The notes under the pieces: generated by a model
The model's input: the letters and a program-made list of their open reading frames with translations, nothing else
Databases searched by the model: none
Told to the model about the DNA's origin: nothing
Program-made: the position numbers and the translations under genes
Shown: piece by piece, positions 16,714 through 39,986 of the stretch
Layout of the letters: each line of letters opens with the position of its first letter
Numbering within the stretch: the stretch's first letter is position 1
Assembly: GCA_002269645.1 (NCBI GenBank)
Contig: NIVC01000660.1
Coordinates: 248,001 to 312,000, forward strand
Length of the DNA: 64,000 bases
Origin: Macrostomum lignano
Lineage: Eukaryota
Direction of reading: 5' to 3'

Positions 16714-19700
16714 TTACATATAAAGAAATGTGACTAATCCTGTTACTACAGCCATGGCCATGGATCGCATCCATCCGGTACCTGTGTTGCCACCTGTAGT
16801 TCTCGGCCCTCCAGCGGTTACGATTGCCAGTACATTAAATTCTTTTATAACTGCGTTCTCGCAACACGCAGACAGCTGCTCATTGATCCAGCTTTTACTA
16901 CTCCGAATGGCCTCTTGAATCAGATAGGGAGGAATGTGCTCCGGGTCTTTGTCCGCTGTAGTACGGTATGGGTTGTGCAACTTTATTTAGAATGCAATTT
17001 TTACAAGGTTTTACTTAATTAAAGAAATTGTTTTTTATATTAAGATAACCCGGTTTTCTTTCAAAACGAGAGTTCATACTCGTATATAAGAGTGCGGACC
17101 CCGATCCGATGAAAACAGTACCTAGCCTAAAATAGCGTCCTTGAGTCACTTGCGTCGCCCCAGAGTCCAGAGTCCAGGTAACATGACATACGTAAAATGG
17201 TAAAGATGTGTCTCTAGACGACTCTAAAACGACAATATACGAGGGCATCACGGTACAAGTCGCGGGGTTAGTCGCCAAAAAGTCGTCAAAGTGTCGCCTA
17301 AGAGTAAATTTGAGGCGTTTTATTGTCTGCGACTGGGGCGACCCAAGTGACTATGGGCTTGGAGTCGTATCTATGGCGTGCTGGAGACTGGAGTCACTGT
17401 AGGATCACAGGAGTTGCTTCTAAAGCGCATCTGCGTCACTGTATGCATTATTGTAGAATCACATTTCGCATCTATAACAATTCCGTTTCGTCTGCTTGAG
17501 TTAGCAGAAAGTAAGTTATGCGCCAATACAACACGACGACTCTTAAACAAACATTTCGCGACTCTTGCAAATCTACAACTCACGTAATACATGTACGCTT
17601 GTGACTCAACAGTAGGTCGCCTCTCCGTCGAATTGCGATTCTAGTCACTGTGTAATGTCTTCAACAGGTAATCCTCTTCTTGATCCTTTAATTAACCGGC
17701 CACATACCCGTTAATCTCTAAATGAGCCGCCATGCCCTTTGACTTCTAAGTAAGCCGCTTAATACTCATTGATCTTTAAATCAACAATCAAGAAAATAGC
17801 AGAAATATAACTTTCAACTCCTCACAGCTTGGCGGATTGGTCTTCGGGTTCAGCTTATCCGAATGGTAGCAGAGCACAGGGTCCTGTATTGCACTGACCA
17901 TAGCCGCCCGGACGTACACCATAAGTTCGCCGTTCTGATTCAGCTGAAGCAGATCCGGTTCCTGTATGAACCAGTTTGTATCTACAAACTTAGCGGTCGA
18001 GGTGGATACTAAGGAACTGTAACTCTTGTCTGGGCAGCACATTTTGTAGCGACTCTCGTGGCTTCTGCAGAAGCTGTTCACCGACAACGATAGCAGGGTC
18101 TGAAGACTTCTCCACAGCACCGAGTGAAACTGTGTAGGCAGGCGTGAGAGTTAGAAGCCATGCAGTTCTTTATGTATAGACTCGAAACTCATACGAGATT
18201 AAAATAAATATTAAAATATTTGCTACTTATATACATTCATGTCGAATCATTAAGTATTTTTATCTTCCCAGATTCATGGACTGGGCAATCGTCACCCTCC
18301 CAGATCCTCAGTTGCTGGGCCTTCCCAGATCCTTAGTTGCTAGGCCAGCCTCCCAGAGTGTTGGTTACTGGGCCAGCCTCACAGAGTGTCAGTTGCTGGG
18401 CCAGCCTCCCAACTCCATCCTCAGTTGCTGGGCCAGCCTCCCAGAGTGTTTGTTACTGGGCCAGCCTCCCAAAGTGTCAGTTGCTGGGCCAGCCTCCCAA
18501 CTCCATCCTCGTTGCTGGGCCAGCCTCCCAACTCCATCCTCAGTTGCTGGGCCACTTCCCCCTTTCAGATCGTCAGTTTCTCAGATCTTGAGGTACCAAA
18601 CCGAATTAGTTAAATGTACCAGCTAAACGGTGGCTTTGCATTATGCATGCTAAATTATGGGCTCACTCAAACTTATCGAAAATAAGCCCAAGTAAACTCA
18701 CCAGCGACATGGACAGCTTGCCAGGCCCGCGCACCCCCAGTCGCAGCGCAACGCTGTTTTTATACCGGGCCAAAGTCACCTGGCACTGCCGGCCGAAGTA
18801 TCCGATCGGACAGGTGCACCTGCAATTCGATGGCGTCGCCTCCGGCCGACGGGTGCCGCCGTTGCTGCAGTCGCATCTACGACACTGACCGATGAGACGC
18901 TGCTCACAGGTTTCGCAGTCTCTTGTGCAGACTGCCGGTTACGCATGGAATATACATGTTAGAGAAACTGGTACGTACATGTACATGCCTCTCAGATCCT
19001 CATCCTCAGTTGCTCGGCCAGCAACACACGCCGTCTGCCCCATCATACAATACGTCAACGCACTGTAAAACGCCAAACTTCCATATGAAACACGCCAATC
19101 ACGATACAACACACCAACCCCCCAAACACCAAACCCATACAACACGCTAAACCCCATAAATAAAACACAACAACTCACCATAAAGCACACCAAAAAACCA
19201 TAATAAACGCCAACCACCCATGAAACACCGTCTTTTAAAAATCATACCAAGCCTTAAACTATGCTAACCCAATAAGCCCTTCGCTACTATGGCGATTTTT
19301 ATACTTCGAATTAGGTGCTTTAGGTAATTTTGGTGTGTTTGTTTAGTGAAAGCGTCGACTTGCGCGTGTTGGGGAGGGATTGTCGTGCGCGTGTTGGAGA
19401 AGGGTGACTTGCACGTGTTGGGGGAGGGGTTGGCGTGCGCGTGTTGGGGGAAAGGTTGGCGTGCGCGTGTTGGGGGAGGGGTTGGCGTGCGCGTGTTGGG
19501 GGAGGGGTTGGCGTGCGCGTGTGGGAGGAGCTGGGGTGACATAATTGCACGTGTTGGGGGAGGGGTTGGCGTGCGCGTGTGGGAGGAGCTGGGGTGACAT
19601 AATTGCACGTGTTGGGGGAGGGGTTGGCGTGCGCGTGTTGGTTGGCGTGTTTTATGTGGTGTTGAGCATGTTTTCTTGGCGATTCCGGATGGACTATATC

Positions 19701-39100: not shown

Positions 39101-39986
39101 ACATACCCGTTATAGTAGTGTGAATAGAGACACACCGTTAGAAAGGTGTCGTTTTTGCACCTACTAACGCCGCAGCCGATTTGAGTCAACTCTGAGCTCA
39201 TTATGTTAGCGTAGCGCATGCATGAGCAGTTCCGTCTGCAGTATCTTGGTCTTGGACTCAAACTGAAATTAGCCACGAAGTTGTCAACCTCTGAGAACCA
39301 TTGATTCATTATTTCTTTGGGATCCATTGTTGGACCAAGGTAAACATTTTGATCAAGTCCTTTATATTCTCTGAGAGATTTAAAGTTCTTGTTCACAGTG
39401 CGCCTTTTAGCCCTGACCGTAGCTAAGGCCTCCAGTGTGGCGCTCAATGTCTGAAATTCGATGTGTTGCTCTAGACAGACAGACAGACAGACAGACAGAC
39501 AGACAGACAGACAGACAGGCAGGCAGGCAGGCAGGCAGGCAGGCAGGCAGGCAGGCAGGCAGACAGGCAGGCAGGCAGACACTAAGACAGACAGACAGAC
39601 AGACACTAAGACAGACAGACAGACAGACAGACAGACAGACAGACAGACAGACAGACAGACAGACAGACAGACAGACAGACAGACAGACAGACAGACAGAC
39701 AGACAGACAGACAGACAGACAGACAGGCAGGCAGGCAGGCAGGCAGGCAGGCAGGCAGACAGAAACAAAATGCGTCACTCACGACAAAGTTCATCGCCCT
39801 AGCAGTTGGCAATGCTCTCTCCCTGAAGTTGTTATGAAGTCGCGCGTACTGTTTAGATATGTTGCTCGGGAAGAAGTAAGTAGCATTTGAGCCTGACGTC
39901 GCGTATAGATGTACATTCTGGGCAATAAACAGTAGCCACAGGGTCAAAAATACTTTAGCGCTGAATGCTACTAGAATGAAAGTCAT
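33138..39986 (-). CDS. CAP-EGF membrane-anchored protein, paralog 3 (multi-exon)
   Basis: Exons 39986-39783, 39450-39107 (CAP; IGCGVSRC..VCLY), 38993-38848, 38770-38657 (EGF1), 37127-36898 (EGF2), uncertain exons within 36821-35208, 35169-34869, 33447-33138 (hydrophobic tail; 1-nt frameshift at 33411). Confidence 0.82.
33640..34555 (+). pseudogene. Intron-containing Crypton/DUF3504-like tyrosine recombinase, 5'-truncated, inside the last intron of paralog 3
   Basis: FYVLYCLGERGQEHL; YLDLLP..HLFPQP; KAGLSKMYSNHCIR|VTRITDLEAAGHSMADIMSITGQTSERTARRYL; GT-AG intron 34124-34245; tail FNNCTF. Confidence 0.82.
34619..34808. repeat. 16-bp tandem repeat (CCGACACTTCATATCT), ~12 copies
   Basis: Tandem periodicity. 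Confidence 0.92.
35367..36077. repeat. 44-bp minisatellite with two CTGATTGG motifs per unit, ~16 copies
   Basis: Unit GTTTTCTGATTGGCTTTCCATTCAACAATTCTGATTGGACACGA. Confidence 0.95.
36262..36690. repeat. 33-bp minisatellite (CACCCAGCAGTGCGTCACCCTACATTGTGCTGT), 13 copies
   Basis: Tandem periodicity. Confidence 0.95.
37165..38606. repeat. 21-bp intronic minisatellite (GTCAGTAGCTAGATCGAGACT), ~68 copies
   Basis: Tandem periodicity; ORF 37166-38800 is an artefact. Confidence 0.96.
39473..39762. repeat. (CAGA)n/(CAGG)n compound microsatellite
   Basis: Fills intron 1 of paralog 3. Confidence 0.96.

Follow-up and report, generated by a model that had tools for sequence, protein, structure and literature searches.

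Three Tandem CAP Genes of Macrostomum lignano and Their Probable Surface Tethering on EGF-Like Spacers and a Predicted Ferredoxin-Like Domain

Introduction

Few secreted families have expanded in the flatworms as much as the CAP (SCP/TAPS, or venom-allergen-like, "VAL") proteins, for most of which a mode of action is lacking; the described platyhelminth members are almost all bare CAP domains. A survey of platyhelminth VALs published in 2012 found that 98% consist of the SCP/TAPS domain only, with extra domains (FN2 and LDL-receptor) in 5 of 228 proteins, that a hinge is present in more than 90% of the turbellarian group 1 VALs, and that the VALs of Macrostomum lignano fall into species-specific clades (PMC3435950). 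CAP expansions specific to lineages are a general trend in the flatworms (10.1101/2024.02.05.578899). The subject of the present analysis is a stretch of 64,000 nucleotides of the M. lignano genome (contig NIVC01000660.1, positions 248,001 to 312,000 of the forward strand), hereafter the window, in which three CAP genes form a tandem cluster.

Some CAP proteins are held at the membrane: GLIPR1 by a transmembrane (TM) segment, GLIPR1L1 and mammalian PI16 by a glycosylphosphatidylinositol (GPI) anchor. Urabin, a CAP protein of ascidian sperm, is also GPI-anchored (PMC9265791). As for folded domains next to the membrane, the MAD12 domain of the cadherin PCDH15 is membrane-adjacent, dimerizes in parallel, and is invisible to SMART (10.1101/460097).

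The three genes are best explained as old, fast-diverged paralogs of a CAP subfamily restricted to Macrostomum. We consider it moderately likely that they encode surface-tethered, probably GPI-anchored proteins in which a non-enzymatic CAP head is carried on a stalk made of EGF-like modules and a ferredoxin-like domain. Proteins of this family have already been deposited, named only "hypothetical" or "SCP domain-containing"; what is new is the architecture, as a variant of a known family.

The Gene Cluster and Its Two Genome Copies

Gene models were built by reading all three frames over every candidate exon. This gives gene 1 at 16714-21569 (-), gene 2 at 25323-32694 (+), and gene 3 at 33138-39986 (-), in the -,+,- order that had been proposed from a first reading of the DNA (the original prediction). 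All 17 introns are of the GT-AG type, and their phases are 0,2,1,1,0,1 in genes 2 and 3 and 0,2,1,0,1 in gene 1, which has one intron fewer. The series predicted for gene 2 was therefore right, with the phase 2 of intron 2 requiring that a frameshift be read across (see below), and the predicted agreement of the other two genes with gene 2 is complete for gene 3 and holds for gene 1 minus one intron.

The original prediction had also assigned to each gene a signal peptide, a CAP domain, a CRISP-like hinge, two EGF exons, a shared cysteine module, and a hydrophobic C-terminus, and had noted that the proteins have little identity to one another. All three genes have such parts, with a signal-peptide-like segment at the N-terminus and EGF-like exons after the hinge, except that gene 1 has one EGF exon rather than two. 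Pairwise protein identity among the three is indeed only 22-26%, while each of them is 28-30% identical to another M. lignano protein, P0013 (BOX15_Mlig001346g1). That the three genes are closer to P0013 than to each other suggests, at the level of sequence, an accelerated divergence of all three cluster genes.

A second contig of the same assembly, NIVC01000074.1 (GCA_002269645.1, Mlig_3_7; segments L001 and L002), runs colinear with the window, to which its unique sequence is 97-99% identical, so the two are copies of the same locus. In the sequenced line, 180 Mb of non-repetitive blocks of Mlig_3_7 are duplicated at 95% identity or more (PMC5730564), and the second copy may be an allele or may lie in a chromosome block that was duplicated.

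The second copy also provides transcript support, the GenBank annotation of Mlig_3_7 being a genome-guided assembly of RNA-seq transcripts and not an ab initio prediction (PMC5730564). When the gene 2 exons are read in this copy, they give a protein of 556 amino acids (aa) that is letter-for-letter GenBank protein P0005 (BOX15_Mlig003617g3), and the gene 3 exons give one of 549 aa that equals P0001 minus nine upstream residues. Thus, in genes 2 and 3, whose models P0005 and P0001 are RNA-seq-derived, the CAP exons, the module, and the tail are part of one transcript, as had been expected. The exons of gene 1 would encode 478 aa, but its GenBank transcript model, P0007, is shorter (see below).

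The CAP Head and the Hinge

In each gene, exon 1 contains the start codon, a hydrophobic, signal-peptide-like segment, and the start of the CAP domain: 21399-21569 in gene 1 (HNRFR; donor gtgagt, phase 0; 98% identical in the second copy), 25323-25487 in gene 2 (HNRLR), and 39783-39986 in gene 3 (HNNFR). The CAP core occupies exon 2, at 20302-20630 in gene 1, at 26203-26545 in gene 2 (343 nt in the window versus 344 nt in the second copy), and at 39107-39450 in gene 3 (344 nt). Gene 1 has a second possible donor of the same phase 15 nt further on, at 20287, which would give an exon of 344 nt as in gene 3; it was dropped for the donor at 20302, which is the one used in P0007. The end of the CAP domain and the hinge are encoded together by exon 3 (19726-19886 in gene 1, 27311-27447 in gene 2, and 38848-38993 in gene 3).

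Membership of the superfamily is clear from the Pfam CAP profile (PF00188), which scores 39.2, 44.1, and 54.7 bits in genes 1, 2, and 3 (E = 1.4e-9, 4.3e-11, and 2.3e-14), above the gathering cutoff of 21.1. Using a three-protein profile against the PDB, the solved structure nearest to the CAP domain plus hinge was found to be GLIPR1 (3q2r, E = 9e-22), followed by snake CRISPs, hookworm ASPs, and PR-1.

The head is nevertheless degenerate. Of the CAP signature motifs (CAP1, CAP2, CAP3 HNxxR, and CAP4 G[EQ]N[ILV]), HNxxR alone is kept in genes 1-3. In an alignment with GLIPR1 and canonical paralogs, one or more of the three genes has another residue in place of the Glu of GEN, and the same is true of the Glu of WY[DS]E and of the His of GHYTQ. 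Among the three CAP heads, the His equivalent to that of GHYTQ is kept by gene 3 only, and there in the second copy (MHYAN); residue 147 of the window allele of gene 3 is Arg in its place. Paralogs elsewhere in the genome keep GENIY (P0011, P0012, and P0013) and GHYT (P0011 and P0013). Membership does not depend on these motifs, SmVAL4 being an example (PMC4118828).

The hinge (the "M sequence") follows in all three genes, as CSACPNSLPLCLNNLC in gene 1, CSDCPAKFSACFGGLC in gene 2, and CSECPPDKPFCFDDLC in gene 3, each of which matches the pattern C-x2-C-x(5-10)-C-x(5-15)-C taken from the survey of platyhelminth VALs (PMC3435950). This region aligns with the hinge of GLIPR1.

The EGF-Like Modules

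After the hinge, no ShK or Crisp Pfam domain is found in genes 1-3, which sets them apart from the CRISP subfamily proper with its ICR/ShK-like cysteine-rich domain, and EGF-like modules stand there instead. In gene 2, the first module (exon 4, 29053-29196, phase 1-1) has 7 Cys and the second begins exon 5 (29970-30226); in gene 3, the first is in exon 4 (38657-38770, 114 nt, phase 1-1) and the second in exon 5 (36898-37127, 230 nt), where CICPDGFSGQRC matches the PROSITE EGF_1 pattern. Gene 1 has a lone EGF-like exon (exon 4, 18702-18931) with 10 Cys, in which CTCPIGYFGRQC also matches EGF_1; it opens with C-x3-C-x2-C like a first module and closes like a second. The observation in the original prediction that genes 1 and 3 have EGF2 exons of the same length, 230 nt, was correct. 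When intron 3 of gene 1 (794 nt) was searched for an EGF1-like exon by tblastn with five family members, none was found in 18932-19718 at E<1.

The two modules differ in how well they are supported. The second resembles the EGF domains of tPA (E = 4e-5) and factor IX (E = 5e-4) in profile searches of the PDB; EGF_1 matches it in two of the three genes, gene 2 being the exception, and the Pfam profile EGF_C8A_B_C6 is below its cutoff in genes 2 and 3 and above it in the paralog P0015. For the first module, the Cys pattern is the sole support.

A Shared Cysteine Module and Its Distribution

Between the EGF-like modules and the C-terminus lies a module of about 170 residues that starts within the final third of the EGF2 exon (the lone EGF-like exon in gene 1), where its strand 1 is encoded, takes up the whole of the next exon, and runs into the last. 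The core exon is at 17826-18129 in gene 1 (304 nt; FHSVLW...FC...CC...LC), at 30830-31124 in gene 2 (FHMEIW...FC...CC...LC; an indel of 3 nt, which keeps the frame, separates it from the second copy), and at 34869-35169 in gene 3 (FHSTIW...C...CC...DGSLHFTF...LC). The landmarks common to the family are N-S at strand 1 and then F[HNK]xx[IL]W, FC, CC, and LC, with a second CC in some paralogs. In gene 1, the frame of this exon is open, its splice sites are good, the motifs of the family are retained, and the two copies agree at 99% of positions.

The module has no sequence counterpart in Pfam or the PDB. The Pfam scan of the three modules gave zero matches at E<=10, as did a sequence search of the PDB with a five-paralog profile; the matches of the gene 2 module in a phmmer search of the PDB (E about 0.24) were set aside as due to chance. 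Using HMMER with a two-row profile made without the gene 1 module, a scan of a library of 1.84 billion cluster representatives returned six proteins, five of which are from M. lignano and correspond to genes 2 and 3, P0009, P0011, and P0012. The sixth, P0010 (E = 3e-14 over 12 stretches), is a bacterial protein of 2624 aa with TIGR02543-type repeats, and was rejected as a sum of weak repeat matches. A word-indexed profile search then added two more M. lignano proteins with the module. One is P0013, a complete canonical member with GENIY, GHYT, two EGF modules, the module, and a tail ending in SVSSGTGGISSLILLVVQQVALIHL; the other is P0015 (UniProt A0A1I8HC59), in which two family members are fused in one gene model of 822 aa.

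M. lignano thus has at least six or seven lineages with the CAP-EGF-module-tail architecture. Outside Macrostomum, the matches are limited to two CAP-hinge-EGF-ShK-like proteins, P0004 and P0017. The claim that this is not a named or widespread family is accordingly borne out by a module that has no sequence match in Pfam or the PDB and that the library scan finds in M. lignano only. Family members also occur in tandem elsewhere in the genome, and in the model P0009 two copies are joined to a retroelement; given the tandem and fused models P0009 and P0015, the size of the family is likely to be under-counted in current annotations.

The Predicted Fold of the Module

AlphaFold2 was run on the module with a six-row alignment, replacing a two-row run in which the best model had a mean predicted local distance difference test score (pLDDT) of 60.5 and the other four were below 40. 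The new model has a mean pLDDT of 71.9 and a predicted template-modeling score (pTM) of 0.73, all five models lie between 69 and 72, and all five share the topology b1-a1-b2-b3-a2-b4 (b, strand; a, helix). When this model was compared with the PDB by Foldseek, the top matches formed a coherent set: ten full-length ACE2 entries (E = 2e-3), PCDH15 EC11-EL and EC9/10-MAD12, the ferredoxin-like domain of Nup54, CDH23 MAD28, and the CELSR1 ectodomain. The ACE2 entries are all of 698 aa or more, a length at which the ferredoxin-like "neck" of the collectrin-like domain is covered, and this neck is probably what the model matches. At the level of the predicted fold, then, the module may be described as a sequence-orphan ferredoxin-like juxtamembrane domain, whose fold is probably a known one.

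A different assignment, which would be compatible with surface tethering on EGF-like spacers, would make the module a SEA domain that has diverged strongly, with autoproteolysis possible at the b2-b3 hairpin in some members. SEA domains, such as those of transmembrane mucins and agrin, have the same order of secondary structures and the same juxtamembrane position after EGF modules, and the b2-b3 turn reads DGSLHFTF in gene 3 and DGSLK[IV]G in the two halves of P0015 (P0015a and P0015b), which is positionally like the G|SVVV site of MUC1 (PDB entries 2acm and 6bsb confirm the sequence of the MUC1 SEA domain and the two chains that its cleavage leaves). Moreover, a cleaved SEA domain is deposited in two chains, so Foldseek could miss it, which tempers the finding that no SEA entry is among its top 50. 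However, Pfam SEA (PF01390) gives zero matches even at E<=10, the Ser of the turn is missing in genes 1 and 2 (NGE and GGL), and hhalign of the five-paralog module profile with the MUC1 SEA domain gives a probability of 0.1. On the strength of the hhalign value and the lack of a Pfam match, membership of the SEA family is not established, and we regard this assignment as possible but doubtful.

The C-Terminal Tail

The last exon encodes the end of the module, a linker, a hydrophobic tail, and the stop codon. It lies at 16714-16955 in gene 1, where the linker is rich in G and T, at 32369-32694 in gene 2, where the module part comprises helix 2 and strand 4, and at 33138-33447 in gene 3 (310 nt in the window versus 311 nt in the second copy), 1.4 kb past the module exon. 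The C-termini of genes 1, 2, and 3 are SMAMAVVTGLVTFLYM, (V/C)APFINFITALLSVLLTK, and GTVIACTLACTLSASFFLNFVRIFF, and the segments before the hydrophobic stretch, which are rich in G, S, T, and N, are GGPRTTGGNTGTG; KSYSS; and TAGDTGG...SRS. By hydropathy and inspection, the C-termini of genes 1-3 and P0013 are all consistent with a GPI signal.

Alternatively, the proteins might be secreted or type I membrane proteins, with the hydrophobic stretch serving as a TM helix or being spliced out, and with no GPI anchor at all. The annotated isoform of gene 1 does lack the module and the tail, two ab initio UniProt models of gene 3 (P0002 and P0003) end before the hydrophobic tail, the stretch of about 25 residues in gene 3 would be enough for a TM helix, and GLIPR1, the nearest solved relative, is TM-anchored. 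However, the tail is kept in P0013 and in the models of genes 2 and 3 that are based on RNA-seq, and in genes 1-3 the protein stops 0-2 residues past a hydrophobic stretch of 15-25 residues, with no basic stop-transfer residues after it and with small residues before it. The tail appears to be shaped like a textbook GPI signal and less like a type I TM anchor. A secreted or TM form is unlikely; surface tethering, as judged from these tails, is plausible.

Frameshifts and Constraint

In the window as assembled, two frames are broken, each by one missing nucleotide: exon 2 of gene 2 has TT at 26484-26485 where the second copy (L001) has TTT, and exon 7 of gene 3 has CCC at 33411-33413 where the second copy (L001) has CCCC, and both exons are in frame in that copy. 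The UniProt model P0002 of gene 3 has the allele-specific residues of the window and yet is in frame across the site at 33411-33413, which favors an assembly error; both homopolymer frameshifts are probably of this origin.

The exons of the two copies differ by about 1% (1.4-2.2% of synonymous sites, pS, and 0.4-1.4% of nonsynonymous sites, pN), whereas in the 150-nt intron flanks the difference, with gaps counted, is 7-12%. The pN/pS ratios between the copies are 0.29 for gene 1, 0.63 for gene 2, and 0.40 for gene 3. The contrast between exons and introns, together with the motifs kept across such distant paralogs, argues for function. That the window copies are instead pseudogenes, decaying on one of the homeologous or duplicated chromosomes of DV1, whose genome is a hidden polyploid, as the broken frames, the degenerate CAP motifs, the ratio for gene 2, and the extent of the duplicated blocks in Mlig_3_7 might suggest, is improbable, because both lesions are single bases in homopolymer runs, as is typical of long-read assembly errors, one of them is bridged by P0002, about 4.8 kb of coding sequence is otherwise without stops or indels, and the exons are far better conserved than the introns beside them.

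Points That Weigh Against Surface Tethering on a Ferredoxin-Like Stalk

Several observations count against the reading of these genes as functional, tethered CAP proteins on a ferredoxin-like stalk. In P0007 (308 aa), the sole RNA-derived model of gene 1, the 304-nt module exon is skipped, so that the last exon follows at once on the EGF exon and is read out of frame to its end; the product would be a truncated, secreted protein. Genes 2 and 3 are frame-broken in the window as it stands in the assembly. The pN/pS ratios are based on just 10-26 substitutions per gene. As regards the module, the predicted model is of low confidence at the loop 121-138 and in the C-terminal 10 residues, Foldseek gave no match to the PDB at E<=0.001, with TM-scores of about 0.35-0.39, and the ferredoxin-like fold is a very common one. 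Finally, in the literature searched, no expression or functional data were found for Mlig024536, Mlig003617, Mlig016489, or Mlig001346.

A Possible Mode of Action

In order from the N-terminus, the parts of each protein are a signal-peptide-like segment, a degenerate CAP head, the metazoan hinge, EGF-like spacers (one in gene 1 and two in genes 2 and 3), the module, a short linker rich in G, S, T, and N, and a hydrophobic segment that has no cytoplasmic tail after it. If the reading of a tethered CAP head is correct, such a protein would enter the secretory pathway, and its C-terminal segment would be exchanged for a GPI anchor. The ferredoxin-like domain would then sit on the membrane as a stalk, possibly dimerizing in cis as does PCDH15 MAD12, and the EGF modules would distance the CAP head from the cell surface. 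The head itself, which keeps the signature of the fold but has lost most of the motifs and at least one of the usual His/Glu positions of the cavity, would act as a non-enzymatic surface that may bind a ligand.

The placing of a CAP head on EGF spacers and a membrane-adjacent domain, with a probable lipid anchor, points to a role at the cell surface, whether in cis or dependent on contact, rather than to that of a diffusible protein. What this role might be is another matter. Adhesion or gamete recognition, as put forward in the original prediction, would be a guess by analogy. The most specific version, in which a rapidly diversifying, Macrostomum-specific family of GPI-anchored, "receptor-like" CAP proteins on an uncatalogued SEA/MAD-like juxtamembrane domain would serve gamete, sperm-partner, or other cell-surface recognition in this hermaphroditic animal, as may be compared with Urabin, and in which the genes of the cluster would have lost the ancestral cavity residues through neofunctionalization, is in our estimation very unlikely to hold as a whole. 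The paper on the seminal-fluid screen does not mention CAP or CRISP.

These genes are of specialist interest and do not overturn what is known of the superfamily. In M. lignano, transgenesis, RNA interference, and in situ hybridization are routine, and the function of a tethered CAP head is therefore directly testable there. The module, for its part, would add a metazoan case to the ferredoxin-like juxtamembrane domains that the domain databases have missed.

Introns, Flanks and Neighboring Genes

The introns of the cluster are rich in repeats. Within 16252-39763, long minisatellites are present in 14 of the 17 introns and in the flank past the 3' end of gene 1, for example, a 15-nt unit repeated 66 times at 31188-32172, a 21-nt unit repeated 69 times at 37167-38609, a 33-nt unit repeated 45 times at 27498-28994, and a 44-nt unit repeated 16 times at 35369-36077. 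The lengths of the arrays are unequal in the two genome copies. The first of these arrays accounts for an open frame of the type (APGAK)n/(PVLKP)n at 31180-32190, which was rejected as non-coding since it is the minisatellite of gene 2 intron 6. Intron 1 of gene 1 is 768 nt long in the window (20631-21398) versus about 18 kb in the second copy (L002, 10171-28404), in which a 23-nt minisatellite is expanded and the open reading frame (ORF) of a long terminal repeat (LTR) retrotransposon is inserted (RVT_1, RNase H, and integrase; 1051 aa).

Stray ORFs are found at two places. One, at 24292-24755 (-) between genes 1 and 2, has a match to the Pfam QRICH1 domain that is below threshold (E = 1.6e-6). 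The other is a pair at 33642-34555 (+), within intron 6 of gene 3, which is without a Pfam match and which looks, by eye, like the C-terminal part of proteins derived from tyrosine recombinases of the Crypton/DUF3504 type.

On the side of gene 1, two exons of a myotubularin-related phosphatase gene lie at 1618-2139 and 13076-13741 (+). They are separated by a Ty1/copia-type retrotransposon (gag, integrase, and RVT_2) at 2524-12449 (-), itself broken at 7384-9421 by another element with large ORFs. On the other side, gene 3 is adjoined by an ADAMTS-like gene with many TSP1 repeats (about 43289-51237, -), which is annotated in the second copy as a protein of 1830 aa (Reprolysin, ADAMTS_CR, and TSP1).

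Comparison with Known Systems

Of the known systems, GLIPR1 (3q2r) is like genes 1-3 in its hinge, which matches residue for residue (YKxGxxCSxCP...C...LC), and in having a membrane tether at the C-terminus, as is predicted for them. It differs in that nothing corresponding to the EGF modules and the ferredoxin-like domain stands between its hinge and its anchor, and in that its GEN and GHYTQ motifs are kept, whereas those of genes 1-3 are partly lost. Urabin and PI16 likewise combine a CAP/PR-1 domain with a signal for GPI attachment, such as the tails of genes 1-3 would represent, but, as far as they have been described, they have neither EGF modules nor a folded domain next to the membrane.

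Group 1 of the platyhelminth VALs shares with these genes the superfamily, the signal peptide, and the "M sequence" or hinge, whereas an extension consisting of two EGF modules, the module, and a tail is not described in the survey of that group (PMC3435950). In other organisms, P0004 and P0017 (28-30% identical) have, like the proteins of the cluster, a CAP domain, a hinge, and then an EGF-like module with the pattern C-x3-C-x2-C...C-x-C-x-C. Unlike them, they have no second EGF, module, or hydrophobic tail, and they end in an ShK/ICR-like Cys domain (with a weak Pfam ShK match in P0004).

As for the module, its top Foldseek matches, with weak scores, are MAD12 of PCDH15, MAD28 of CDH23, the MAD of CELSR, the neck of ACE2 and collectrin, and the alpha-beta domain of Nup54. 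The cadherin MADs, too, are "unknown regions" for the domain databases (10.1101/460097). There is no sequence similarity between these membrane-adjacent ferredoxin-like domains and the module, which is set apart from them by its family-specific cysteines (FC, CC, and LC, with or without a second CC) and by a long insert between a1 and b2.

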